Below, piece by piece: positions 4,547 to 48,615 of a DNA stretch of 64,000 nt; within the stretch, counting starts at the first letter, position 1, and each line of letters opens with the position of its first letter. The stretch comes from Macrostomum hystrix (lineage: Eukaryota > Animalia > Platyhelminthes). The notes beneath the pieces are model-generated. The model made no database searches. It worked only from the letters and a program-made list of their open reading frames with translations, and was not told the DNA's origin. Location: assembly GCA_950097015.1 (NCBI GenBank), contig CATNEN010000002.1:7316001-7380000 (forward strand), read 5' to 3'. A program made the translations under genes and the position numbers.

Positions 4547-7500
4547 ATGGCCCATCAGGACAGGGAAGATCAGGTATACTTCGCTAAGCTCGCCGAGCAA
4601 GCCGAACGCTATGATGGTATGTTTAAAAGTTTATATTGCTTGTTTCATTTTATAGGCATATCTATCGCATAGGCAGCTAGCTAGCCTGTCGTCATAGTCA
4701 TCGATAGTATGTCCTTAGTCTTATACTATAAAATGTTTGCATCACCTTTTATCCATATTTGTACTTTTACTAACTGTTCACTTCACTTGAATTTACTAAA
4801 AATGAAAACACTGCTGTGTAATATTCTAATGCTTATGCTAAATTATGCCTTTGTGAAAGTTTTTAGAAGTTCGACTTCTAGTAACACTACTAATTATTAA
4901 ACATATATATTCTTCTTAAACCTAAATTTTTTGGAAAAGCCATGATTTAATATTTGGCATTAGTTGACTATGGTTCTTGTTCTTTTTAAAACATGTTTTA
5001 ATTTGTGCAATAATTTTTTTGCTTTTCAAGAAGAGATCATAAAAGATCTTATACTATTTTAAGCATATAATATCTAAAATAGACTAATTTTGGATTAAGA
5101 TCTAGATTTTAGATGAATCCAGGTAGCTAAACTTTTAATCTGTAGTCTGTCAACAGTGCATTAATTAGCACACAAAATAAGATTTTTATTAGTATTTTTC
5201 CAGTTTGGTTTGGCATTGTTATTTTTGTGCAATTTTTAATAGATAAATAGAGTTTACAGAAAATATTCAGAGTTCTGTGAGGATTCATGCAATTTATTGG
5301 AATATACTCTGTCCTAACATTGTTAATCCATCATAGCTACTAACCTAAGGGCTCCAATGAGAAATTAAAAGTAAATATTCCATATTTTTGGTTTTCTTGT
5401 GTTTTCAGATCTTGCTTTTCTGAGTTAAAAGAGACCTCACTCATCAAAATTGGTCAAGTAAAAATAGTTATAACATTTTTTATTAACATTTTAAATGTTT
5501 TCATAAGGAAGTGCTTATTCCCACGGTCCCATGCCGATAATTTCAATTTTATCCACACAGATCCGTGCCAATAATTTTCTGCTTATCCACACGGCAGCTT
5601 GTATGAATAGGTCTACTTTCAAGTCCCTACCTATTCTTCTCTGAGCATAAGGCTTTTGCTTCAGAGTATAGTGTATAGTGTACACTATCAATGCATAGTG
5701 TAAAATAATAACAGTGATGTGTGATAATATGTGTGACAAGTTTGGTGCTGACTAGAATTCTGCTGGTTGACTCGTATGATTTTCTTTGATAGACTTCTTA
5801 CTTTTTAAGTCAATACAATTCGAATGAAAACAGGTAATGATGACAAAAGATGTAGTAAGTTGTTATTACATAATTACAATAATTAAAAAGGATGACATTA
5901 ATGTCGGTTAATGAATGTGTAGGTCGAAATGTAGAACACATTCGTAACACACTGGCAACTTTGTCAATCTATTGGCTCGAGGGTTCAACAAAACATTCAA
6001 ACCCGAAAGGGCCTCATTTCAAAAAGACAGAACCATGTGGATAAAATTGAAATTAATGGCACAGCTTATTTATATAAAGAGTTTTAGACCTATTCATACA
6101 AGCTACAGTGGGGATAAAGTTGAAATTATTGGCACGGGACCGTGGGAATAAGCTCTGCCTTTTCATAATGTATTTTTCAACTCTTTTGGCTTTAAGTGGC
6201 AAAGCCATACCTATTTCATAGCTTAACAAAGAGATGTCACATAGACATCAATTTACTATTTACAGTCAATTGCAAAAGCCATCTGAAATGTGTAACATTA
6301 GAGAAACATGTTTCTGGGAGATTCCACTTAAGGAAAATAAAAAGGATTGAGTGTATCATATTTTACATGAAATTTTATTAGGATACACTTAGAAAACACT
6401 ATTTATAAACAATGATTGAAAAAATAAAAATAAAATTTAAACCAAAAAATTTGCAAAGTAAAAAAACAGTCTTTTACTAAAAATATTTGTTAATATAGAT
6501 GTTTGTATCCTCTTTCTTAATTTTTAATTTGTTTATTTCAGTATCAATGCACTAGTAAAATTTTTAAGTTTTACATAAGGTAGTATTTTCTAAATTTTGA
6601 TCACACAGCAAATACTTTAAAAAAATATAATAATGTCAATTATTTGACATAGACTGTCCATAGTTCAGTAACTTGCAGTTAAATTAAACATTTTGGACTA
6701 GTAAATTCAAAATCTTAGTCATAATTCTGTTGAAATAACATAAGATATGTCATTGTAAAGCAGGGGTCAGCAAACTTTTTAGCAAGCGGGCCACGGAGAG
6801 AACCTATAGGACGACAGCGGGCCGTACTAACTGTAGGAATATGAGAAAGGGGAGAGATGAGACACAGGATAGATGAGAAATGGGAGAGATGAGACACCGG
6901 ATAGACAAGACAGGGGAGGGATGAGCCAGAGATGAGAATAGATAAGACTGGAGAGAGACGGGAGACACTGGAGAGATGAGACAGGATACTATAGGTGGTG
7001 GAAGGGGCAATGGGCCAGATTTAGGGGCTTCGAGGGCTGCATCTGGCCCGTGGGCTGGAGTTTGCCGACCCCTGTTGTAAAGTCTTTGCAGTCAAGCAAC
7101 ACTAAAAGGTTTGCCCAGCATGAAGTGATTCACAAGTTCTGAGCCAAGAAATCCACAGTTACAAAAATGGCCACCTTCAAATAAAAAATTATAAATATAA
7201 GTTGTTTATCTTCAAACTTGTAGACCTTGTAGAACTATCCCAGTTTTGAAAAAAAACATTGTCCTCAAAATTTGACAAAATTCCAGTCATTCAAGTTTAA
7301 TTTTAAGATCATGACTAGTGCTTTTATCTATCCAAGCTCAGAATTTTTTAAACATAATTTTTCTCTATTAGCATAAAAATGTACTTTACAAATCATCAAA
7401 CAGAGATGGTCGACTCCATGAAGGCCGTAGCCGTCATGGACGTCGAGCTGACTGTAGAGGAGCGGAACCTGCTGTCCGTGGCCTTCAAGAATGTCATTGG

Positions 7501-8282
7501 AGCCAGGCGGGCCAGCTGGCGCATCATGAGCAGCATCGAGCAGAAGGAGGAGGGCAAGCCCGGCTCGGACAAAGTTGAGCTAGTTCGCAAATTTCGTAGC
7601 CAAGTTGAGAAGGAACTTAAACAGATCTGTGAGGACATCCTGGACGTGCTGGATAGTCATCTCATCCCCAGCGCTACCGTGGACGAGTCGCGCGTCTTCT
7701 TCTACAAGATGAAGGGCGACTACCTGCGCTACATGGCCGAATTCGCCACTGGCGCCGAGCGCAAGGAGGCCGCCGAGAACAGCCTGTCGGCTTACAAGAA
7801 TGCCACGGACATTGCCAACGCCCACCTGCCGCCAACTCACCCGATTCGCCTCGGCCTAGCCCTGAACTTCTCCGTGTTCTACTACGAGATTCTCAACTCG
7901 GCCGACCGGGCCTGTCAGCTGGCCAAGACTGCCTTCGATGAGGCCATCGCCGAGCTGGACACCCTGTCCGAGGATTCCTACAAGGACAGCACCCTGATCA
8001 TGCAACTGCTCAGGGACAACCTCACCCTGTGGACCTCGGACATGCAGACTGGTGACGGTGAGTTGGAGACTAGTGGCCGCCAGTTCAGAGTTAGACAGTC
8101 AGGTGGTATTGTTACTTATTATTGTGTTTTTTATGCCTCAGCCCTGTTTTACGCGTATAACGGCATTGTTGAAATGATTAGAATTTATGTATTATCCGCA
8201 CGGCATCTTGAGCCCGGCACAATACAAACTTATGCCTCGCATTGCAGAAGAGAAAGAGGGCGACAAAGACTCCGGCAACTAA
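4547..8282 (+). CDS. YWHAE: 14-3-3 protein, epsilon type; exons 4547-4616, 7404-8057, 8248-8282; 252 aa
   Basis: Exon 1 reads [24 protein letters not shown]|gtatgt. Exon 2 carries [40 protein letters not shown] and [22 protein letters not shown]. Both introns are phase 1 GT-AG, and the spliced length is 759 nt ending [11 protein letters not shown]. Confidence 0.95.
5507..6159. mobile_element. Mutator (MULE)-type MITE in 14-3-3 intron 1
   Basis: Imperfect TIRs of about 50 bp (GGAAGTGCTTATTCCCACGGTCCC... / ...GGGACCGTGGGAATAAGCTCTGCC) with repeated subterminal motifs. 9-bp TSD TTTTCATAA at 5498-5506 and 6160-6168. No transposase ORF. Confidence 0.85.
6761..7074. mobile_element. hAT (Charlie/Buster-like) MITE in 14-3-3 intron 1
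   Basis: TIRs CAGGGGTCAGCAAACT / AGTTTGCCGACCCCTG and an 8-bp TSD TTGTAAAG at 6753-6760 and 7075-7082. The interior is a purine-rich simple repeat. Confidence 0.9.
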
Positions 8283-9489
8283 GAGGCTGCTCGATGGCCA
8301 ATTTAGAACTAGAAAACCTTGGAGTCCGTGTCGAATGAGAATGAGAAAGATGAACGTTTTTCTGACACAAATTTTCTGCTATACTACTAAGCTAGTAGAA
8401 CACTTGCGTAAGTTATTTATAAAATTCTTAAAATTGTTTTTTCTTCTATGCATTCTTCGATATAGTTTCCTTTCGAATGTCTCTTTAACTCTCAGAACAA
8501 CACTTGGACTTTTTTGTCCTTTCCCCCGTTTCTTCGAAATGCGTCTCATTGTAGCCGCTAATTTAATATTCTGAGGAATAGCTGTTGTGCGTGAAATAAT
8601 TTTTTGTTTATTATAAAACCAAATCGTTTTTGTTCGCAACAATACATCGTTACAATACAATTATTTTAGAAGCTTTTGTTAAGCTTGGAAGAGAGCACAT
8701 CTGAAACAGTTGATGAGCCAGAGAGTGTCCATTGTCCGTGTCTCAACCTAATCCCAGTGCATCATCATGCGTATTCCCTTCTATCCTGTCTCTTCAATTT
8801 TCTTATATTTTTTAGTTTACCAAAATTATTACTTTAAGAATGTTTTCTTTTTCTTTGAAGTTACACCATTTCTACACCAAATGTTGAGACTGCAGTTGGT
8901 GATCTCTCAGGCTGTGTGCCTATAGTAACTAAAATTTAATCGCAAACATACTTTGTTCTCTCTCTATGGACTCTATTAATAGAAATAGTTGTTATTATTA
9001 AGACATAGCTAGCTCTGTTTCTCTGTCCATGGCTGCCTGTAGAGCAGACTTAATTAGCTTCTTTTGCTGTTTCCTGGAAAAGGCCTTTTTAAACCCTGTT
9101 CTACAATAGCTAATAAATCCGGAAAATCGTGTTTTTATTTACAACAATCAAATAATAGACGCTATTCGTATACACTCGCGCAACAGAAATCGATAGTACA
9201 GGACATTTTTGACGCGCTGAACATCCAACTCACAGTTGCTTGCTGCCTGTTCTCTTTTAGCTCCGAGTGAGCAGTAGCTTAATGTAATAGAACAATAAAT
9301 AAAATACTGAACATCCACGTGGAAGTACGTCGCGCTGTTACTATTAAAACAAAAGTTGTAGTTCTTAATCCAGCTTTTTTGTCTCAAATTGATTTGTTGT
9401 TGCTATTAGAAAAGCCAATCTATAGTCGCTCCATTCCACCTAAGGGATGGACTTCAGACATCCTTTCGACACGAAGAAATAAATATTAA

Positions 9490-30161: not shown

Positions 30162-30352
30162 TGGCGGCCTTCTAAAAATTGAGTCTTCCTGATCCTCACA
30201 GCTCGAGCTCGCGACCGCCTCCAGTCAAGTTTTCTTTGACTGAAAGCAAAGTATTTATGAATTTGTTTGCGCATATATATTCATTTATGTGAAAGCCCAT
30301 AGTTGCAATTGAATTATTGGGAAATTATTTGCACCAGACCTTAACTCCTTAA

Positions 30353-31445
30353 ATTCGTCGATTTTCTTGAATTTGTCGATTTTCTTGAATTCGTAGATTT
30401 TCTTGAATTCGTCGATTTTCTTGAATTCGTCGATTTTCTTGAATTCGTCGACTTTCTTAAATTCGTAGATTTTCTTGAATTCGTAGATTTTCTTGAATTC
30501 GTCGATTTTCTTGAATTCGTCGACTTTCTTAAATTCGTAGATTTTCTTGAATTCGTCGATTTTCTTGAATTCGTAGATTTTCTTGAATTCGTCGATTTTC
30601 TTGAATTCGTCGATTTTCTTGAATTCGTAGATTTTCTTGAATTCGTCGATTTTCTTGAATTCGTCGACTTTCTTAAATTCGTAGATTTTCTTGAATTCGT
30701 CGATTTTCTTGAATTCGTCGATTTTCTTGAATTCGTAGATTTTCTTGAATTCGTCGATTTTCTTGAATTCGTCGACTTTCTTAAATTCGTAGATTTTCTT
30801 GAATTCGTCGACTTTCTTAAATTCGTAGATTTTCTTGAATTCGTCGATTTTCTTGAATTCGTCGATTTTCTTGAATTCGTAGATTTTCTTGAATTCGTAG
30901 ATTTTCTTGAATTCGTCGACTTTCTTAAATTCGTAGATTTTCTTGAATTCGTCGATTTTCTTGAATTCGTAGATTTTCTTGAATTCGTCGATTTTCTTGA
31001 ATTCGTTGACTTTCTTAAATTCGTAGATTTTCTTGAATTCGTCGACTTTCTTAAATTCGTAGATTTTCTTGAATTCGTCGATTTTCTTGAATTCGTCGAT
31101 TTTCTTGAATTCGTCGATTTTCTTGAATTCGTAGATTTTCTTGAATTCGTCGATTTTCTTGAATTCGTCGACTTTCTTAAATTCGTAGATTTTCTTGAAT
31201 TCGTCGATTTTCTTGAATTCGTCGATTTTCTTGAATTCGTCGATTTTCTTGAATTCGTCGATTTCCTTAAATTCGTTGGTTTTCTTGAATTCGTCGATTT
31301 TCTTGAATTCGTCGATTTCCTTAAATTCGTTGATTTTCTTAAATTCGTCGATTTCCTTAAATTCGTCGACTTTCTTGAATTCGTCGATTTTCTTGAATTC
31401 GTCGATTTTCTTTAATTCGTCGATTTTCTTAAATTCGATTTTCTT
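30353..31445. repeat. 18-bp minisatellite of about 60 copies, downstream of the collagen stop
   Basis: Unit GATTTTCTTGAATTCGTC, with an EcoRI site in most units. Confidence 0.95.
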
Positions 31446-32255: not shown

Positions 32256-32605
32256 TTTAACCTCATGCTCTTCTTCCATCCAAGTGGGAAGAGCGATTCC
32301 CTTGGTAACTAGGGATTGGCATTTCCGTGTACTTTTATTCAGAAAGGCCCGCTTTGCATCAAACTCAACAATTCAGCAAATACATGCTGCTACATATGCA
32401 TGTGCAGAGCACGGCACTGGCTGCAGTGCGAATCCGGATCACAAGATTGGGCTACAAATACAGTTGCCACGCTCTGTCACTCTGATCCTCATTTCTTAGA
32501 AACCTCTACGGTTCAAAAGCATTGTAAGACGAAGGCGGTTCAAAATTTAAAAAAACGGGAACAGACAGATACGAGTAGAAACTCGTAGGGACATTGTGAG
32601 ACCAT

Positions 32606-34489
32606 CTATTTGCTCACAACTTCAATATTGAAATTCTCACAGCCCCTATTGATGGAAAATTCAATCTGCGGTATGGATTGGCCTTCACTCGTATTATCTT
32701 GGAGTCGCTTTTGCACCAGCTCCGCCAGCTGACTGATGTCGTACGTGCATTTGCTGACTTTCATGCCTTTCAGGACTTCTAAAAGCGCATTTAGCATCCG
32801 GCCGCCGTTCCTCTTCGTCCGTGTGCATGTATAGCCCGCCATGGAGGCATAGATGGCAGCTATGTTTGGCGTGTCCTGTGGAATGCAGCAGTTTCTGTAG
32901 GCTGGATTCTCGAAGCCGAGAGAGCATGCAAACCATTCTGGATGCTTGAGTTCACCTCGACACGCTTGATACAGCAGCAGGACTTTCATGTTTGGGTTAA
33001 ATTCGACAAGTAGCTTCACAATCTCCGGTATCGGCAAATCCTTCCCATCCGATGTGCGAATTCCATACTGCGAGCCGTGAGCTGCGATGGCCAGAAGCAT
33101 GCGCACATTGTCGTTCTTGTACTTCTTCGCGATGCATTCGATGCCTTTTGTGATATAACTGTACGACACTTTTCCATCTCGGGAGAACATTTCCAATTCG
33201 CAGCCGAGATTTTGTTTAATTTCTTCTAAGTTACTAATATCTTTCTTATAGCCATTTCGGATTTCTCCTCCACGATAATGGCCAATCACAATCGCCACAA
33301 GGACTTGAGTCGGGTCCCGCTGGCTCTCATCGATACTTCTCGGTAGTCTGCTCGTTAGTAACTCAAGTTCTTTCAGGTTTTCGTCTTGACTGGGAATAGC
33401 AGCCTGCTTAGGGCTCGGTATTCCAATGTGCTGAACTAATTGCCCACATCGGTTGTCAATGAACATGGCCAATTTGCCAGCCCAGTCAATTCCAGTTGCT
33501 CCATCTTCGATAGCTTTTTCCAAGTCACTGAAGGCATCGCGCAGTTTTTTCCAATCGATGTTGGAGCCAGACTTGAACCTGTAGAAGTCTGTGCCGCACG
33601 GAAAGGGACGATTCGGCTTACATTTATCGGTGATATCTGCTCGATTGCGTGTGCTCTGTACACCCATCGGGTAGGGAAAACAAAACACCCTTGTTCGCTG
33701 ACCATCTTGCTCGCTGTGAAGCGGCTTCAAAAGTTTCTCTTCGTACACAGAATCAACATTCGCTGGCATTCCAGTTGAAGTTGTTGGAATCGCGAAAATA
33801 ACCCAAACTTCAGGGGCTCGCGATGACTTCGCAACTTCAGTCTTGAATTGGCTCACGGATTCGATAAATTCTTTCCCAGAAGTCACGTGTCGACAGGTGA
33901 TGTTGAAGTTGTGGCTGCTAAACGGAATACTTTGATTGTCCCCCGAACTGATCAGCAGAACGGGAACTCTTTGATCCTTCTCTGGAATGTGAGGGCAGGA
34001 GCTGGTTAAGTCACTATTCTGAATTAGTTGTTGCAAATGATTTAACTTTTTCCTCATGGATTCTGGAAGCTCCTTGCTAGTCTCACCGCGAGTAACCTCT
34101 GCTGCGCTGAGGAAGCTGGAGAAATTGCATCTTCAGTAGCTCGCATTTCTATCCTTTTTTTTCATTCCAATTCAAACTCATTAGGTAAGTCTACATGCAA
34201 TGCACCTGATCAGTGAACCACCACCTTGAAGGGACACGAACCTGATTCTGGTGGTGTAACAGACGACGGAGATGTTCTTCCATCCAGCTCATATACAGGT
34301 GACTGACCTCTGTGGGATCCGAAAATTGGAATGTCGAAATGCTGAATAAAGTTTAAATTAAGACATTTCAAAATGTATCTTGTTTGAAATACAGACTAAA
34401 GGTACTCACTGAATTAACTCATCATTCACAGTTTCGAGTGCCGGCAACGACTTCCCGCCCGTCCTGTTGACGCCATCTTCACGATCCAT
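32606..34489 (-). CDS. Caspase (peptidase C14) with an N-terminal caspase-like pseudo-domain; proposed exons 34489-34410, 34309-34242, 34101-32606 (547 aa)
   Basis: The C-terminal domain has AIAAHG (His codon 33079-33077), LYQACRG (Cys codon 32962-32960), the L1 Arg in IRNGYKKD and the L3 Arg in GYTCTR. Upstream exons join in frame (ca|gtgagt phase 2; g|gttcgt phase 1). The start may lie further upstream; an acceptor exists at 34505. Confidence 0.85.
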
Positions 34490-34526
34490 AGCCCCCGTCT
34501 CTCCACTGGCTCCGAAAAGCGAAGAG

Positions 34527-34738
34527 TTGAGAGGTAGGAGTTGAGAGGTAGGAGTTGAGAGGTAGGAGTTGAGAGCTAGGTAGGAGTTGAGAGGTAGGAG
34601 TTGAGAGGTAGGAGTTGAGAGGTAGGAGTTGAGAGCTAGGAGTTGAGAGCTAGGAGTTGAGAGGTAGGAGTTGAGAGGTAGGAGTTAAGAGGTAGGGGTT
34701 GAGAGGTAGGAGTTGAGAGGTAGGAGCTGTAAGAGGTA
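34527..34738. repeat. 14-bp minisatellite
   Basis: Unit GTTGAGAGGTAGGA, abutting the caspase exon A acceptor region. Confidence 0.95.
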
Positions 34739-35871
34739 AGGCAATTGCAGGCCTTATATGCTGGCGTATTGGCATTTGCTGCCCAACTACAAAGTCCCGG
34801 TCGAGCTGAGATTAAAAAGAGACCTTTGAACCCGTGGCGGTTGCACCGGGGCTTGACGTCGGCCTCTGCGATAAGGGCGAGAAGAATAGCTTATACTGAC
34901 AACGACGGTACAAATAGGCACGGCGATCTTGAGGCCAAAGTATAACTATTAACTTTCCGTTGCATGGCGCCCTGCTGGACTCGCCTTTATGTGACCATTT
35001 GATAGTTGGAGCATGCTATAGTGTACAATCTATTTTCAAACTCTTATTCGAAAAGTCAACACCAACGCCTCAGCTGTGTTGACCGCCCTTGGCTTGACGC
35101 ACCAACAGGTCAAATTGGAACCGAAATGTTTTCTTATTTACCTGCAATAGACTTCTAACACGCACTGCTTTAATTACTCCTCATAGAAAAAAATCTGTAA
35201 GTCATTAATGGTACAGTACTTATTTCAGCAAGTTTACCAAGTACTTCTTGTGTTTCTAAAACTGCGCGGTTTCCCGCGAAGTTCTCTTCCAGTGCTCTTT
35301 CCAACAAATGTTTTCCAATTATTATTCTAAAATTTTTCTATTTAAAATTCCTGCCGTTGTGAAATAGCGTCCTGAACCTGGTGATGCTAAATTTGTGAGC
35401 ATTACCTTCTAAATGTAACGTTATTTCTCTGCTACTCAACCTACGCTATACCTTTTTTAGCCTTCATTGGAGGCCTCGGTTGCCCTCTCTTGGGCTCTTT
35501 GTCTCCAAGATAAGCATATAAGCACCAAATTACAGTGGACATTCGGAGTGACTATCTTCACAACGGAGGACAAGGATACCGACGATCATCATGGAGACAG
35601 GTGGCCTTCCATTCGTGTGACCTTGTGATGACGCGCAGGAGAGTGGTCGGCACGATGAATGTGACGTCCTGTTGCTGAGTGCAACAGTGACGCGGACAGG
35701 ACCATCGGCTGGATGATGGCTGCCACCAGCGGCGATTGACTTTAATGCCATTGATTCAGTCGAAGTTAACACAATGTTTTAATTTAATTTATATTAAGAT
35801 GTTGAAATTTAAATATATATAGAAGTTTCAAGTCTGCTAGCTGCTCCCAACTTCTCCCAGCTAGTAAAAAC

Positions 35872-36161
35872 TTAGGGAAACTGCATTCAAATTCGGACAA
35901 CCTCTATGGCTTAGGGAAACTGCATTCAAATTCGGACAACCTCTATGGCTTAGGGAAACTGCATTCAAATTCGGACAACCTCTATGGCTTAGGGAAACTG
36001 CATTCAAATTCGGACAACCTCTATGGCTTAGGGAAACTGCATTCAAATTCGGACAACCTCTATGGCTTAGGGAAACTGCATTCAAATTCGGACAACCTCT
36101 ATGGCTTAGGGAAACTGCATTCAAATTCGGACAACCTCTATGGCTTAGGGAAACTGCATTC
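35872..36161. repeat. 39-bp minisatellite, about 7 near-identical copies
   Basis: Unit TTAGGGAAACTGCATTCAAATTCGGACAACCTCTATGGC. Confidence 0.95.
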
Positions 36162-36579
36162 CAACTGCAATTTGGCGAATTTGAATGCAGTTGGATCAAT
36201 ATGATGGGCTTGTGCCATAGATATTTTTGTATCTGGTTGAGCTGGTGCCGAACTTGAATGCAGTTTTATTGAACTTGTTTTAAAAAATGGCGAATTCGAG
36301 TGCAGAAAGGGTGTATTGTTCTTTTGTTATTCTTTACGCAGACGCTGAATACGCGTACATGCATCTATAAATCTTCGATTTGAATTCGAGCTCCTTTGAC
36401 TGCTTTAATCGTTTTTTTGCTACTATTTTTACTGTAAGTAGTGCAGCTAATACACTTTAGTTCTAATCCGAATGAAAATGAGATCGGATGCGGCTGCCGG
36501 CACTCGCAGGTCCCAGGCGTGGCGATGGGCAGCCCGAGTGTCTAGCACCACTGCCAGCGATCTGTTGGCGCAGCAGCTG

Positions 36580-36983
36580 CTTGAGGGCTCGGTGGGTGCC
36601 AAAAGGCGCCGCTTGGCCCAGGTGAGGAGTTGGATCCAGGAGTCGGTGGAGGATGGGTTGTCGCAAACGGCCCGCAGGGCTTGTGCCAGGCTGTCAGCTG
36701 CACAAGGGATGAGGGCCGCTGGGATGCTGTGGACAATGGTACCTGGCCAGAATACATCAGAAGGCTACTGGCTTGGTCTGATTTGGTTGCCAGATGGATC
36801 AGCAGTCTGCGGTTGGGCTGGACTGGCTGGCGCAGCATTTGGGGCCGGCACAACTGGGGCCTGGCTGGAGCCTTGGCATTGAGCATTGTGTGCACTGTGC
36901 CGAGAGATTCGAGCCACTCCTTCGTTGATGCAACTAGCGCAGTTGCGCCGGTAGGCTGGGCAGATTCCACGAGGCCGTCTCAT
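36580..36983 (-). pseudogene. Decayed N-terminal fragment of a CRE-like non-LTR retrotransposon ORF
   Basis: MRRPRGICPAYRRNCASC...RHSAHNAQCQGS (zinc-finger-like), a Pro-rich linker, one in-frame TAG (36767-36765), then TIVHSIPAALIPCAADSLAQALRAVCDNPSSTDSWIQLLTWAKRRLLAP. This last block recalls the 'RIP...A..L......W..LL.F....L..P' block that precedes the RT in CRE-clade elements (from memory). No RT follows. Confidence 0.5.
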
Positions 36984-37114
36984 GCAATGCCATGAAACAA
37001 ATTGAGTCTTCGCAGTAAGAGAGAGGGTTAAAGCACCCTAGAATGTTATTACGCGACTTCGAATCGATTTTCGCTCTTGAATTGCAAGTGTGCATTCTAC
37101 TGGATGCCTTGACG

Positions 37115-37660
37115 TCTCCCTCTCCCTCTCCCTCTCCCTCTCCCTCTCCCTCTCCCACTCCCTCTCCCAATCACTCTCCCTCTCCCTTTCAATTTCCCTC
37201 TCCCTCTCCCTTTACCTCTCCCAATCACTCTCCCTCTCCCTCTCCCTTTCAATTTCCCTCTGGAGAAATCTGGAGCAAGGACCACTAGTAGATGCATTTT
37301 CTACTTGAGTAGTCCGTGATCTGGAGTTGGAGTTGCCTTGGTTCGAATCCTGATTTCAATTTTTTCTATACATATCGGAATCGATTCCAACATTAGATTT
37401 TTGAAATTCAATGGGCAGTGTCCTCTCTCCTCTCTCCCGCTCTCTCTCTCCCTCTCTCCCTCTCTCCCAATCACTCTCCCTCTCCCTCTCCCTTTCAATT
37501 TCCCTCTCCCTCTCCCTTTACCTCTCCCAATCACTCTCCCTCTCCCTCTCGCTCTCCCTCTCCCTTTCAATCTCCCTCTCCCTTTCAATCTCCCTCCCCC
37601 TCTCCCTCTCCCTCGCCCTTTACCTATCCCAATCACTCTCCTTTTCTCCAATCACTCTCT
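37115..37660. repeat. (TCCCTC)n-based simple repeat, two blocks
   Basis: Blocks at 37115-37260 and 37425-37660 share CCCAATCACTCTCCCTC and CCCTTTCAATTTCCCTC landmarks. Confidence 0.9.
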
Positions 37661-38304
37661 CTTCTACCACTCTTTCCTTTTTTGCCAACGTTTCAAAGGC
37701 ATGCAGTCAGTAAAATCCAAATCGATGCGTGAGCTCGCCCAAGGCCTCACTTTAAAGGCACTTTCAAACTGGCAGTGTTTACTAAGCTGCAACAGCGGCC
37801 GCCAGCAATTGCTTTCACAAATCATTGCCATTCGAGTTTTTCTTCCGCCTACTTTGGCGGTTTCTCGGGACGTCCCAATATCCCAGAAGACATTGCATGG
37901 GAATTGCACCCTGCGCAGCCAAGATACGCCTGCTTCGAGCCGAAAGGCAAATTGCTGCTATAGGCAGAAGGACGCTCTGACAAACGACCCACAATGTCCA
38001 TGCAGCCATAGTCTGTCTTCGCTTTCCTCTAGCCCGGATGTTCAGTGGCAGCTCTGCTAGTATTAGTATACAATACTCGTATTAGTAATAGTATTAGCAC
38101 TAGTACTAGTATTGTGCCACTGTTTGTGACGAACAAATTCGAGTGGCTTACTAGTTTGAATTCGCCATATTCTGCAATGAATTGTAATTTATTAGTTTAT
38201 TAAAATCTAACAAAGTTTGGTGGGTTAAAAAGCAGAGTTGTATTCCTGGGGGTAACCATATCCCAGCGAATTACTCACTGCCTTCCCTTAAACACCCACC
38301 ACAC

Positions 38305-44861: not shown

Positions 44862-47800
44862 CTTACTTACTTACTACTGGCGGGGGGCGAGACGCCGCGA
44901 ATAGGCCGCGAGGCCCCTATCGCAACCCCAAGGTAAAAGGAAGGTGGCCTCAGCCTTGGGGGTGCGCCCACCCCACGCCAGCAGTCGGCAGGTTCGCCGG
45001 GGAGGCGTCGGCGACCTTCATCCGGCCGGTGTCACGGACGAAGGCGCGAAGGTCTCGGATGTTGTCCGGAGTGGTCAGTTCGTCCATCCCTTGCGGGTGG
45101 CCGAGGTGCCAGTTGCGCGCCTTATCGAAGTAGGGGCAGAATGTCACGTGATGCGCAGCGGTTTCTTTACCTATGCCACAGAAGGGACAGGTGGGGGAGC
45201 AGCCAGTTTGTAGCGAAATGTGTCTCTGGAAGAAGCCATGGCCCGTGATGACCATGCACATCTCCCTGAGGTCAGTTCTATTAAGTGAAATCAAAAAGTC
45301 AGAGACTTTTCGGTTAATGATCGGCATGGCCATACGGGTCTGCCTATAGTCGGTGCAGCTACTCCAGTGGAGCTGGTGTTGCTGATTTAGCCACCTGTCA
45401 ACAGTGCGGTTGATGAGGGATTTAGGTACCGGTACCCTGATCGGGCGGTGGTTGTTGTCCGGGTTGCTGCCATCCTTGGCGAGTTTGTCCGCGAGTTCGT
45501 TGCCAAGGATGTTGCTGTGGCCTGGGATCCAGATTAGGCTGATCCTGTTAAGGACCGCGAGTGACTGCAGGTCTCGGTGGCAGTCAGAGACCGTCCGAGT
45601 GGAGAGTTTGACGGCAGACAGAGCCTTGAGGGCGGCTTGACTGTCAGAATAGATGCAGATGTTGAATCTGCTGACGTTGGCATTGAGGAGGTGTTTGGCG
45701 CATTGGTTAATGGCGTAGATTTCGGCTTGGAAGACCGACGTGTTCTCACCAAGGTGAAGGCTCTCCTGAAGGAGCGCCTTACCCTCATGGAAGATGGCAA
45801 TGCCTGCTCCGGCTAGGCCGTTGCTCAGCGAGCCATCGGTAAAGCAGTGGATACCCTGGCTGCGCTGGTTTACGCCGACGTCCAGCTGAGTGCTACCACG
45901 GTCAGGGATGACGGCGCTAAAACCCCTCCTGAGGATGAGGGAGGGAGGCTGGCTATCCACATCGTTGGGGTCGATGTGGATGTGTGCAAGGTCACGGCGG
46001 ACATAGTCCAGATGCGGAATGAGAGATTTGTCAGGAATAAATCCGGTTGGCGTATTCTTAATGGATTTATCGCAGATAAGCCGGTAGGCGCACTTCATAG
46101 CCTCCGCCCTAATAAACAAATAGAGCGGAGGCATGTTTAAGATAGTATTAAGGCCCTCGTATGGGGTGGAGGGGTACGCACCTGCAATGGCACGGCAGAT
46201 GCTGCCCTGCAGCTGGTAGAGTCGGTCGCGGGCGGTTTTCTGTTCCAGTACGCTGGACCAGATGAGGCTCGCATACGTAATACTCGGTCTAATGATACCG
46301 GTGTAGATCCAGCGGACCGTTCTCGGGGTGAGGCCCCAGGTCGGTCCAATGGCCCTACGAACTTGGGCGAAGCAGCGTTTTGCTCGTCCGATGATGTTTC
46401 CAAGGTGTTTTGTCCAGCGCAGATCGTGCGTGAGCGTTACACCTAGGTACTTGGTTTCCTTTTCGAAAGGGATGTTCCTACCATACATGGTGAGGTTTTG
46501 CATGTCCCACTTACGTTTTCGAGTGAAGACAATTGCTACCGTCTTGGTGACGCTGATTTTGAGGCCATGCTGGGTGGCCCAGTTTCCTGCCTTGTTGGCG
46601 AATTGCTGTAGCAGGTTACGCAGGGTGCTGGTGTCTGGCCCGCTGACCACCGCGGCGACGTCATCGGCATAGCCGGCCCTGGTGACACTGCTAGGTACAT
46701 CAGCCGTCAGGAGCTCGTCCATGACGAGGTTCCAGAGCAGCGGGGTAAGCACACCGCCCTGGGCGCCACCTTTCATCACTGCGCGGGTGCAGGTGATGTT
46801 CATGAGCGTGGAGGTAACGGATCTGTTGCGGATCATGAAGTCGATCCAGCGAGTTATGCTGGGTCTGACGCCTCTGTCTGAAAGGGTATCTCTGAAGGAG
46901 CCAAAGTTGACGTTGTCAAAGGCCCCTTCGATATCAACAAACAGCCCGAGAGCGAGTTGCTTGCTAAGGATGGCTTTCTCAATAGCAGAAGTAATAACAT
47001 GGAGCGCGTGCTCGGTAGTTTTACCAGGTTGGAAAGCGAACTGGTACTTACTAATGGGGGCTGACCGCAGGTCGCAGTCTCGGAGCCTCCATAGAATGAG
47101 CCTTTCCATCAGCTTGACGCAGAAGGAGGTGAGGCTAATGGGGCGGAAAGATTTCACGTTGGTATAGTCGCCCTTCGCAGGTTTGGGGATGAAGACAACC
47201 CTGGAGGTTCTCCAGGTGGTAGGTATGTAGCCTGTAACAAAACAGTCAATGATCAAATTTGAGAGAGCTTCAGAGAAACTCTGAAGTTTAAGCGCCTCCT
47301 GTAGGATACAGGGGCTGATCTTGTCCGGGCCTGGGGCCTTAAAAGGCTTGAAGGAGTCAGCCGCTAGCCTCAGCAGGCTCGGCGAGGCGCATTGCTGAAA
47401 GAGGTCGCGATCCTGTGGTCTGTGGTCGTTCACCACATTTTCGGGGTTTTCAACCTGTGGAAAACAGGTAGAGAATAACAGATTTAAGGATTCTTCTGCG
47501 GTGCTGGTGTAGTTACCGTCCAGATGCAGGAGAGAGTTGCACTGAGCGAGGTTGTCGTGCCTGAGTGACCTGATCAGCCGTGCCGTAGGGTGCTGACCCT
47601 CCAGGCTGGCACAGTAGGCCTTCCAGGTGTTCTTCTTCGCCCGTTGGATGCTGCTTTTGTAGATCCTTAGGGCAGAGTGGTAGTTCTCCCAGTCCACCGG
47701 GGTGTTGCTGCTGTGCGCAAGGCGTTGCAGCCGGCGCGAGGTCTTTTTCAAGCGGGTGAGCTCGGGGTTCCACCAGGGCGAATATTTCTTCCTGTGCTTT

Positions 47801-48589
47801 ACCTTGGGGGCGTTTTCACGAATGGCGGTATGTAACAGGTTAGTGAGAGTATTGCAGCGGTTTTCGATGCTGGGCAGATCAGTTCCCTGCAGGGCCTCGG
47901 TTGCCTCGGCCAGGAGGTTGCTTAGGTCTCTGCGGAACCCGGGCCAATCAGCCTTCTTCAGGTTGGGGCGGTCGGCGCAGGGCAGGCGGGATCCTTCGGC
48001 GGAGATTCGGTACTGAATGTACGAGTGATCCGAGAGCGAGGGTATGTCGTCCCTGACCATCCAGTTCTGGACATGGTTCAGGGCGTTACTAGAGGCCAAG
48101 GTTAGGTCTATAACATCACGTCTGTTAGAAATAACAAAGGTGGGCTTTCTGCCTCTGTTGCAGATATGCATGGTAGAGGCGTTAATGAAATCAATGAGCA
48201 GGTCACCTCTCCTGTTTGTGTCACTGCTGGACCATGCAGTGTTGTGGGCATTGGCATCACAGCTAATGATGAGCTTCCTGTTCTCCAGGTTGCAGAAGTC
48301 AGCCAGCTCTTGCAAGCGTGGTGGCGGGACCTCCTCCTGGATGTCTAGGTAGGCAGACGCCAGAATTACGTCGAAAGCAGCGAAGGTACATATGTCCTTA
48401 GAGCAGTACATGGGCATCATGGTGACTGGTATGTCACTTTTCACGAGGGCAATAGCCCTAGGAGTTTCATCGGTACAATAATAAAGGGTTTGGTACCCGT
48501 TTGGCAAACAGGCCGGCTTGCCTCTGCGGGTATATGGTTCCTGAATGAGGTAGATATCAACGTCTTTTTGATATCTGGTTAAGGTATCA
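44862..48589 (-). mobile_element. Non-LTR retrotransposon (LOA/Lian-like), 5'-truncated, with intact ORF2
   Basis: 13-bp TSD AGGTTACTGACTA at 44849-44861 and 48590-48602, and a 3' tail (AGTA/TAAG)n. The clade call rests on the EN-RT-RNaseH-CCHC architecture and recalled similarity. Confidence 0.9.
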
Positions 48590-48615
48590 AGGTTACTGAC
48601 TAACACCCACACCAT
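44950..48615 (-). CDS. LINE polyprotein: APE endonuclease, reverse transcriptase, RNase H and CCHC finger; 1221 aa, uninterrupted
   Basis: APE motifs IQEPY, CDANAH, IDLTL, SDH. RT motifs FRPISL, DIEGAFD, QGGVLTP, YADD, YLGV. RNase H motifs FTDGS, QAEIYAI, SDSQ, GNELAD. C-terminal CPFC...HHVTFC. Confidence 0.95.
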   Translation of the reverse strand: MVWVLVSNLDTLTRYQKDVDIYLIQEPYTRRGKPACLPNGYQTLYYCTDETPRAIALVKSDIPVTMMPMYCSKDICTFAAFDVILASAYLDIQEEVPPPRLQELADFCNLENRKLIISCDANAHNTAWSSSDTNRRGDLLIDFINASTMHICNRGRKPTFVISNRRDVIDLTLASSNALNHVQNWMVRDDIPSLSDHSYIQYRISAEGSRLPCADRPNLKKADWPGFRRDLSNLLAEATEALQGTDLPSIENRCNTLTNLLHTAIRENAPKVKHRKKYSPWWNPELTRLKKTSRRLQRLAHSSNTPVDWENYHSALRIYKSSIQRAKKNTWKAYCASLEGQHPTARLIRSLRHDNLAQCNSLLHLDGNYTSTAEESLNLLFSTCFPQVENPENVVNDHRPQDRDLFQQCASPSLLRLAADSFKPFKAPGPDKISPCILQEALKLQSFSEALSNLIIDCFVTGYIPTTWRTSRVVFIPKPAKGDYTNVKSFRPISLTSFCVKLMERLILWRLRDCDLRSAPISKYQFAFQPGKTTEHALHVITSAIEKAILSKQLALGLFVDIEGAFDNVNFGSFRDTLSDRGVRPSITRWIDFMIRNRSVTSTLMNITCTRAVMKGGAQGGVLTPLLWNLVMDELLTADVPSSVTRAGYADDVAAVVSGPDTSTLRNLLQQFANKAGNWATQHGLKISVTKTVAIVFTRKRKWDMQNLTMYGRNIPFEKETKYLGVTLTHDLRWTKHLGNIIGRAKRCFAQVRRAIGPTWGLTPRTVRWIYTGIIRPSITYASLIWSSVLEQKTARDRLYQLQGSICRAIAGAYPSTPYEGLNTILNMPPLYLFIRAEAMKCAYRLICDKSIKNTPTGFIPDKSLIPHLDYVRRDLAHIHIDPNDVDSQPPSLILRRGFSAVIPDRGSTQLDVGVNQRSQGIHCFTDGSLSNGLAGAGIAIFHEGKALLQESLHLGENTSVFQAEIYAINQCAKHLLNANVSRFNICIYSDSQAALKALSAVKLSTRTVSDCHRDLQSLAVLNRISLIWIPGHSNILGNELADKLAKDGSNPDNNHRPIRVPVPKSLINRTVDRWLNQQHQLHWSSCTDYRQTRMAMPIINRKVSDFLISLNRTDLREMCMVITGHGFFQRHISLQTGCSPTCPFCGIGKETAAHHVTFCPYFDKARNWHLGHPQGMDELTTPDNIRDLRAFVRDTGRMKVADASPANLPTAGVGWAHPQG

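Follow-up and report, generated by a model that had tools for sequence, protein, structure and literature searches.

Single-chain proteins in which an inactive caspase domain is joined to an active one have been described in other animals. The coral caspase-X of Acropora millepora (Moya et al. 2016, PMC4715348), cloned as a cDNA, carries both domains in one chain and has been modelled on the cFLIP/procaspase-8 dimer with its beta6-beta6 interface; a form without the N-terminal domain killed HeLa cells more effectively (PMC4715348), so that the dead domain appears to be inhibitory. In mammalian caspase-16 (Eckhart et al. 2025, PMC12198278), the prodomain derives from duplicated caspase exons, has lost the catalytic dyad, and is predicted to adopt a caspase-like fold. 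Four caspases of the mussel Mytilus coruscus have two CASc domains (PMC10967218, 2024), and a survey of lophotrochozoan caspases (Krasovec et al. 2024, PMC11463336) reports ankyrin (ANK) caspases and one kinase-like caspase from Macrostomum lignano. Here we analyze a caspase gene on the minus strand of a 64,000-nt stretch of the Macrostomum hystrix genome (contig CATNEN010000002.1, positions 7,316,001 to 7,380,000; "the window", to which all coordinates below refer). The encoded protein consists of a short, probably disordered head, an alpha/beta domain of ~190 residues for which no relatives can be detected, a linker bearing several aspartates, and a divergent caspase domain. A sequence-only reading of this locus had proposed a pseudo-caspase fused to an active caspase and had called the architecture undescribed. 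The latter claim does not hold, given the publications on caspase-X, caspase-16 and the mussel proteins; the architecture is already known, and the flatworm case would be a new lineage for it.

A spliced gene encoding a complete caspase

The starting point of the sequence-only reading was a minus-strand open reading frame of 483 amino acids (32606..34057), which is genuine coding sequence. Contigs from four public runs were aligned to window positions 32300-38200, and in one run (X5) a single contig of 1,648 nt, with a depth of 465, spans 32546-33981, 34242-34309, and 34410-34553. Each stretch absent from this contig is bounded by CT..AC as read on the plus strand and so by GT..AG in the sense of the gene, and joining the pieces yields one open frame. 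The runs are available as contigs for which the library type is not stated, and X5 is taken to be RNA because its contig is spliced. The caspase gene is real and expressed, with three exons and the coding sequence join(34489..34410, 34309..34242, 33981..32606) on the minus strand, giving a product of 507 amino acids. The coding part of the 483-residue frame corresponds to exon 3, but its 5' end is not the true start of the gene: its ATG (34057) and initial 25 residues fall inside intron 2, and translation starts instead at 34489.

Exon 1 (34410..34553, minus strand, to the end of the transcript contig) contributes 27 codons minus one base of coding sequence (34489..34410), as seen in the spliced contig and its translation. 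The start codon (34489..34487) is the first in-frame ATG, an in-frame stop lying upstream at 34687 with zero ATG codons between the two. Intron 1 (34310..34409, minus strand; 100 nt) has GT..AG ends and is placed by the contig joint 34309/34410 and its splice context. It is followed by the 68-nt exon 2 (34242..34309, minus strand), which is seen in the same contig and whose translation is Ser/Pro-rich and probably disordered, and by intron 2 (33982..34241, minus strand; 260 nt), which is placed by the contig joint 33981/34242, with the acceptor reading ...CATTCCAG directly ahead of AGAAGG. Exon 3 (32546..33981, minus strand), matched by its contig piece with 0 differences, encodes residues 50-507, the stop codon (32606-32608), and ~60 nt of 3' untranslated region. 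Together the two upstream exons contribute only 50 residues, among which Ser, Pro, and Gly abound, and are too short to encode a CARD or DED. The N-terminal domain lies entirely within exon 3 and is kept in the assembled mRNA rather than being spliced out, and a single contig (32546-33981 plus both upstream exons) shows that one mature transcript carries both domains.

The 5' untranslated region of the gene and the region upstream of it coincide with a 14-bp tandem repeat (GAGTTGAGAGGTAG, ~14 copies, window 34524-34726), within which the transcript contig stops. The unit is probably common to many transcripts or loci, because summed contig depth over the repeat is far above that over the gene.

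That the C-terminal half is a complete caspase, as had been read from the sequence, is borne out by a single, full-length Peptidase_C14 domain (Pfam PF00656, E 5.5e-15, 56.1 bits against a cutoff of 21.4) that matches residues 254-468 of the open reading frame to profile positions 3-227 of 233 and takes in the large and small subunit regions (32654..33298, minus strand). The AAHG, QACRG, and RNG motifs all align to solved caspases. By these alignments, His351 (33077..33079, minus strand), which lines up with the SHG motif, and Cys390 (32960..32962, minus strand), which lines up with QACRG, form the predicted catalytic dyad, and Arg291 (33257..33259, minus strand), aligned with the RNG of 6pdq_A, would be the S1 pocket arginine equivalent to Arg179 of caspase-1. 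The earlier claim that both arginines of the Asp pocket are present is thus secured by alignment for the first of them; the second, placed by motif inspection, is most likely Arg437 (GYTCTR; 32819..32821, minus strand), the presumed equivalent of the SWR arginine (Arg341 in caspase-1), although Thr occupies the position at which most caspases have Trp. A phmmer search of PDB with the small-subunit part gave zero matches, hence there is no alignment for Arg437. Judged by its sequence, the domain is divergent but complete. Between QACRG and the small-subunit strand, Asp419 (CIPQD/T, the slash marking the scissile position; 32873..32875, minus strand) is a candidate site for inter-subunit processing. 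The linker of ~30 residues that joins the two halves (33314..33394, minus strand) offers three further aspartates as putative cleavage sites, D249 (IPSQD/E), D267 (RSID/E), and D272 (SQRD/P).

How divergent the caspase domain is can be seen from its closest sequence match in PDB, which reaches only E 0.0028, and from three word-indexed searches of 5.8 billion proteins, in which the whole open reading frame, the caspase region within the exon-coded protein, and the caspase half alone (the latter two with E up to 10 allowed) returned zero relatives. Nevertheless, the C-terminal half alone has a recognition value of 3448 in the ESM Atlas, where 28 of its 30 clusters are caspases, and Foldseek run on the poor whole-protein model described below returns caspases as all of the top 50 (E 1.5e-4 to 1e-2). 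Pfam finds no CARD, DED, DD, or PYD match in the protein, in agreement with the sequence-only reading on the absence of CARD and DED.

Identity of the N-terminal domain

The domain in front of the caspase (residues 51-245; 33395..33979, minus strand) is delimited by AF2 (AlphaFold) single-sequence models and is an orphan for which neither family nor homologue was found. Our most likely reading, to which we would give somewhat less than an even chance, is that it copies the caspase fold, or at least the large-subunit part of it, in heavily eroded and catalytically dead form. This reading draws on the spacings between predicted strands, which (with strands assigned as in the sequence-only reading) are 32 residues for beta2-beta3 and 39 residues for beta3-beta4 in both halves alike, on the published precedents, on the completeness of the caspase that follows, and on the spliced, high-depth contig that includes the N-terminal domain. 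It is also consistent with the loss of catalytic sites that had been noted: residues 51-245 contain no xHG or QACxG-like motif, and the positions that had been proposed as catalytic hold Pro/Thr and Pro/Tyr. By analogy with caspase-X and cFLIP/caspase-8, a dead front domain might pair in cis with the active caspase domain and would then serve mainly as a built-in brake or as a specificity partner; release would involve cutting of the linker at D249, D267, or D272, with the subunits separated at D419.

Weighing against a caspase origin are the results of all the sequence tests and several features of the predicted structure. Pfam, with E up to 10 allowed, finds nothing in residues 51-245, and NCBIfam gives no meaningful match for the N-terminal half, its sole row standing at E 0.16 and 11 bits. 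Neither a sequence search of PDB nor an exhaustive HMMER search of 1.84 billion representative proteins found a relative of this half; two HMMER matches were rejected as spurious, the proteins being internally repetitive and matched over a 40-residue stretch. Comparison of the halves with each other is equally negative: the best BLASTP E value is 2.7, the Smith-Waterman score is 30 against 29.6 +/- 4.6 for shuffles (z 0.09), and the hhalign probability is <1%. The residue pairings that had been drawn between the halves dissolve under the same scrutiny, the four that could be checked having BLOSUM62 sums of +7, -2, -2, and -16, and we regard the residue-level likeness of the two halves, as aligned here, as no more than chance. 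At the DNA level, a search for an internal duplication yielded nothing beyond chance-size matches of 14-19 nt, and tblastn finds no paralogue within the window. The dead domains of caspase-X and caspase-16, moreover, are still recognizable by sequence, whereas this domain is not.

An end-free global alignment of the halves (z ~2.2) was rejected as support since it joins the C-terminal tail to the N-terminal start, off the collinear map that had been proposed. The same two regions provide the only self-similarity in the protein, in which the final ~35 caspase residues (..QSIPQIEFSI..NFNIEVV; window 32609-32720, minus strand) resemble the opening ~45 of the N-terminal domain (..QSIPFSS.HNFNITC; window 33890-33979, minus strand), sharing QSIP and NFNI. 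This resemblance is weak and not significant (hhalign E 0.09-0.43).

Embedding-based comparison gives a misleading picture unless the halves are separated. When the whole exon-coded protein is supplied with the N-terminal half marked out as residues 1-215, caspases make up 29 of the 30 nearest ESM Atlas clusters. We reject this result as context leakage from the C-terminal half because the latter alone gives identical clusters, while the N-terminal half alone (200 residues) gives no usable match and a recognition value of 1960, short of the 2300 attained by 91 of every 100 proteins whose family is known. In this case an Atlas search on part of a protein, specified by its end points, thus reported the family of the neighboring domain, and the same part as sole input gave nothing.

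The AlphaFold models are single-sequence and poor because no alignment could be built. For the whole exon-coded protein the mean pLDDT (predicted local distance difference test) is 41.2 and the pTM (predicted template modelling score) 0.28; for the N-terminal half alone (195 residues) these values are 46.2 and 0.47, the first 104 residues having block means of 42-76 with a peak of 70-76 at residues 41-60. Numbered within the domain piece, the predicted strands are 5-11, 18-21, 25-31, 57-67, and 94-104, and the predicted helices 35-52, 73-88, 113-118, 143-158, and 164-184, with ~25 residues of predicted coil between the short helix and the two long C-terminal ones. The claim that the N-terminal half repeats the caspase order of elements is upheld to the extent that these strands and helices are roughly collinear with those of a caspase, with the two equal spacings described above and a DFYRF stretch followed by two helices at the place expected for beta5, alpha4, and alpha5. 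Helix alpha1, however, is missing (13 residues between beta1 and beta2 against about 30), beta5 and beta6 are not predicted, and sequence support is absent; by our own inspection, the order fits a deaminase fold about as well.

Fold searches with the two low-confidence models are similarly divided. With the N-only model, caspase large subunits rank top, in the register that had been proposed, but macro, vWA, leucine aminopeptidase N-domain, and designed Rossmann proteins appear in the VIA lists at the same Z. Foldseek with this model has no match that reaches E 1e-3; Arf/Arl and G-alpha GTPases (E about 1e-3 to 1e-2) and nucleoside phosphorylases head its list, with TM 0.2-0.3, and the ESM Atlas shape search returns generic Rossmann-like rows only. 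The whole-protein model, by contrast, gives the N-terminal half a deaminase-like shape. As a control, a wide VIA scan of this same model misses caspases even for the true caspase domain, which Foldseek and a re-ranking recover. The marks of a small GTPase (Arf/Arl/Rho) are missing: there is no P-loop GxxxxGK[ST], beta1 is followed by SSGDNQS with no helix predicted there, and Pfam finds no Ras or Arf match. What survives of the proposed pseudo-caspase/caspase chain is a dyad-less alpha/beta domain, its proposed caspase ancestry finding no echo in sequence, joined to an intact caspase in one transcript.

We put at about even the chance that the front domain is an alpha/beta domain other than a caspase. 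It is possible, if rather unlikely, that it is unrelated or new, neither caspase nor deaminase; a domain invented in this lineage would be one example, a degenerate domain of the nucleotide-binding or GTPase-like kind another. Its role would then be to recruit or to sense, as a prodomain comparable to the ankyrin and kinase-like front ends of other flatworm caspases, and binding of a partner or ligand to it would activate the caspase by induced proximity. The empty searches of the 1.84 billion representatives, Pfam, NCBIfam, and PDB agree with this explanation, as do the recognition value below 2300, the GTPases at the head of the Foldseek rows, the generic Atlas shapes, the mixed VIA lists at equal Z, and the fact that flatworm caspases with unusual prodomains have been published (PMC11463336). 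We are likewise doubtful of, but do take seriously, the idea that what is fused to the caspase is a previously unseen sensor or adaptor domain, whose fold may be a dead deaminase-like one. The gene would in that event belong to a radiation of sensor-caspase fusions peculiar to flatworms, among them those with ankyrin or kinase-like domains, which would act as adaptor-free, fast-evolving triggers of innate immunity or cell death. That the domain is specifically a dead cytidine-deaminase-like fold of the APOBEC/DddA type, without zinc ligands and serving as a nucleic-acid- or protein-binding prodomain, strikes us as improbable: the whole-protein model that suggests it has the lower confidence of the pair (mean pLDDT 41) and failed to place the true caspase domain among caspases in the wide VIA scan, although Foldseek and a re-ranking did so, and no deaminase occurs in the top 50 for the N-only model. 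The HxE and PCxxC motifs are absent, Pfam gives no deaminase match, and we found no precedent for a deaminase-caspase fusion.

Comparison of exon 3 with contigs of the three other runs, which come from organisms coded A and B, bears on a further explanation, namely that the gene arose recently by duplication and is drifting with little if any constraint, so that no conserved function attaches to the front domain or perhaps even to the protein as a whole. Of 15 differing positions (window 32609-33979, minus strand), 12 change an amino acid and 3 are silent, and both halves are affected alike; the contigs are of low depth and may be paralogues, and the numbers are small. These counts suggest no strong purifying selection on exon 3, as judged from the contigs, and would fit either rapid evolution of an immune-type gene or drift of a duplicate; weak constraint or fast evolution helps to explain why no relatives can be detected. 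Drift would also agree with the failure of every sequence search to find relatives of either half. We nevertheless think it the least probable of the explanations considered here, since the 507-codon frame and all catalytic residues are intact, the message is spliced and its contig deep, and diversifying selection on an immune-type gene fits the differences equally well.

Other features of the window

The setting is that of a eukaryotic genome, with introns, minisatellites, and a long interspersed nuclear element (LINE). Two minisatellites flank the caspase gene, one at window 30348-31437 (18-bp unit, ~60 copies, 91% matches) and the other at 35871-36161 (perfect 39-bp unit, 7.5 copies), and both yield long spurious open reading frames. 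Just upstream of the gene, at window 34963-35606, a low-depth X5 contig leaves out 35197-35460. Read on the plus strand, the segment left out begins with GT and ends with AG, pointing to a small transcript spliced from that strand.

Farther away, a non-LTR (long terminal repeat) retrotransposon with an intact open reading frame of 1,221 amino acids occupies window 44950-48615 on the minus strand, in which Pfam recognizes endonuclease, reverse transcriptase, and RNase H domains. An intronless open reading frame of 319 amino acids (window 7379-8338, plus strand) encodes a full 14-3-3 domain (residues 5-219; Pfam E 4e-100) and bears a C-terminal extension of ~100 residues; its exact product is absent from the public gene index, as is that of the 483-residue caspase frame.

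Comparison with known caspase architectures

If the front domain is a dead caspase, the gene would correspond, as a lineage-specific case, to caspase-X of corals and caspase-16 of mammals. The single-chain pseudo-caspase and caspase would then have arisen independently for a third time, corals and mammals being the other two instances and this one belonging to a lineage of regenerating flatworms; the published survey missed it, and erosion would have gone so far that only structure could reveal it. Such a case would argue for built-in, cFLIP-like regulation as a recurrent solution. If the domain is something else, it would be one more prodomain without a death fold in the unusually inventive caspase repertoire of flatworms. 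As it stands the finding is incremental, but under both alternatives the protein, which is small and expressed, can readily be tested.

The flatworm ANK and kinase-like caspases resemble the protein described here in having another long N-terminal domain in place of a CARD or DED. Among them, however, the survey (PMC11463336) reports no pseudo-caspase or orphan alpha/beta prodomain, and the domain in our protein matches no Pfam family. The cFLIP-L/procaspase-8 heterodimer (PDB 3H11) supplies the working model of a dead caspase-like domain that pairs with an active one through the beta6 strands, and the caspase domain modelled here gives weak matches to 3h11_B and 3h13; cFLIP differs in being a separate gene product with DEDs, so that pairing is intermolecular and takes place on a platform. 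Mammalian caspase-16 is similar in that an active caspase domain stands at the C-terminus behind a prodomain lacking the dyad, but its prodomain can be traced to duplicated exons by BLAST-level similarity, whereas in the flatworm gene both halves lie in one exon and show no self-similarity in DNA or protein. In caspase-X, finally, an N-terminal caspase-like domain without the His and Cys is followed by an active caspase, and neither that protein nor the one described here has a CARD or DED. Both domains of caspase-X, a protein of 721 amino acids, are recognized as CASc by sequence; in the N-terminal half of the flatworm protein no similarity can be detected, either to caspases or to the C-terminal half, and helix alpha1 is missing.
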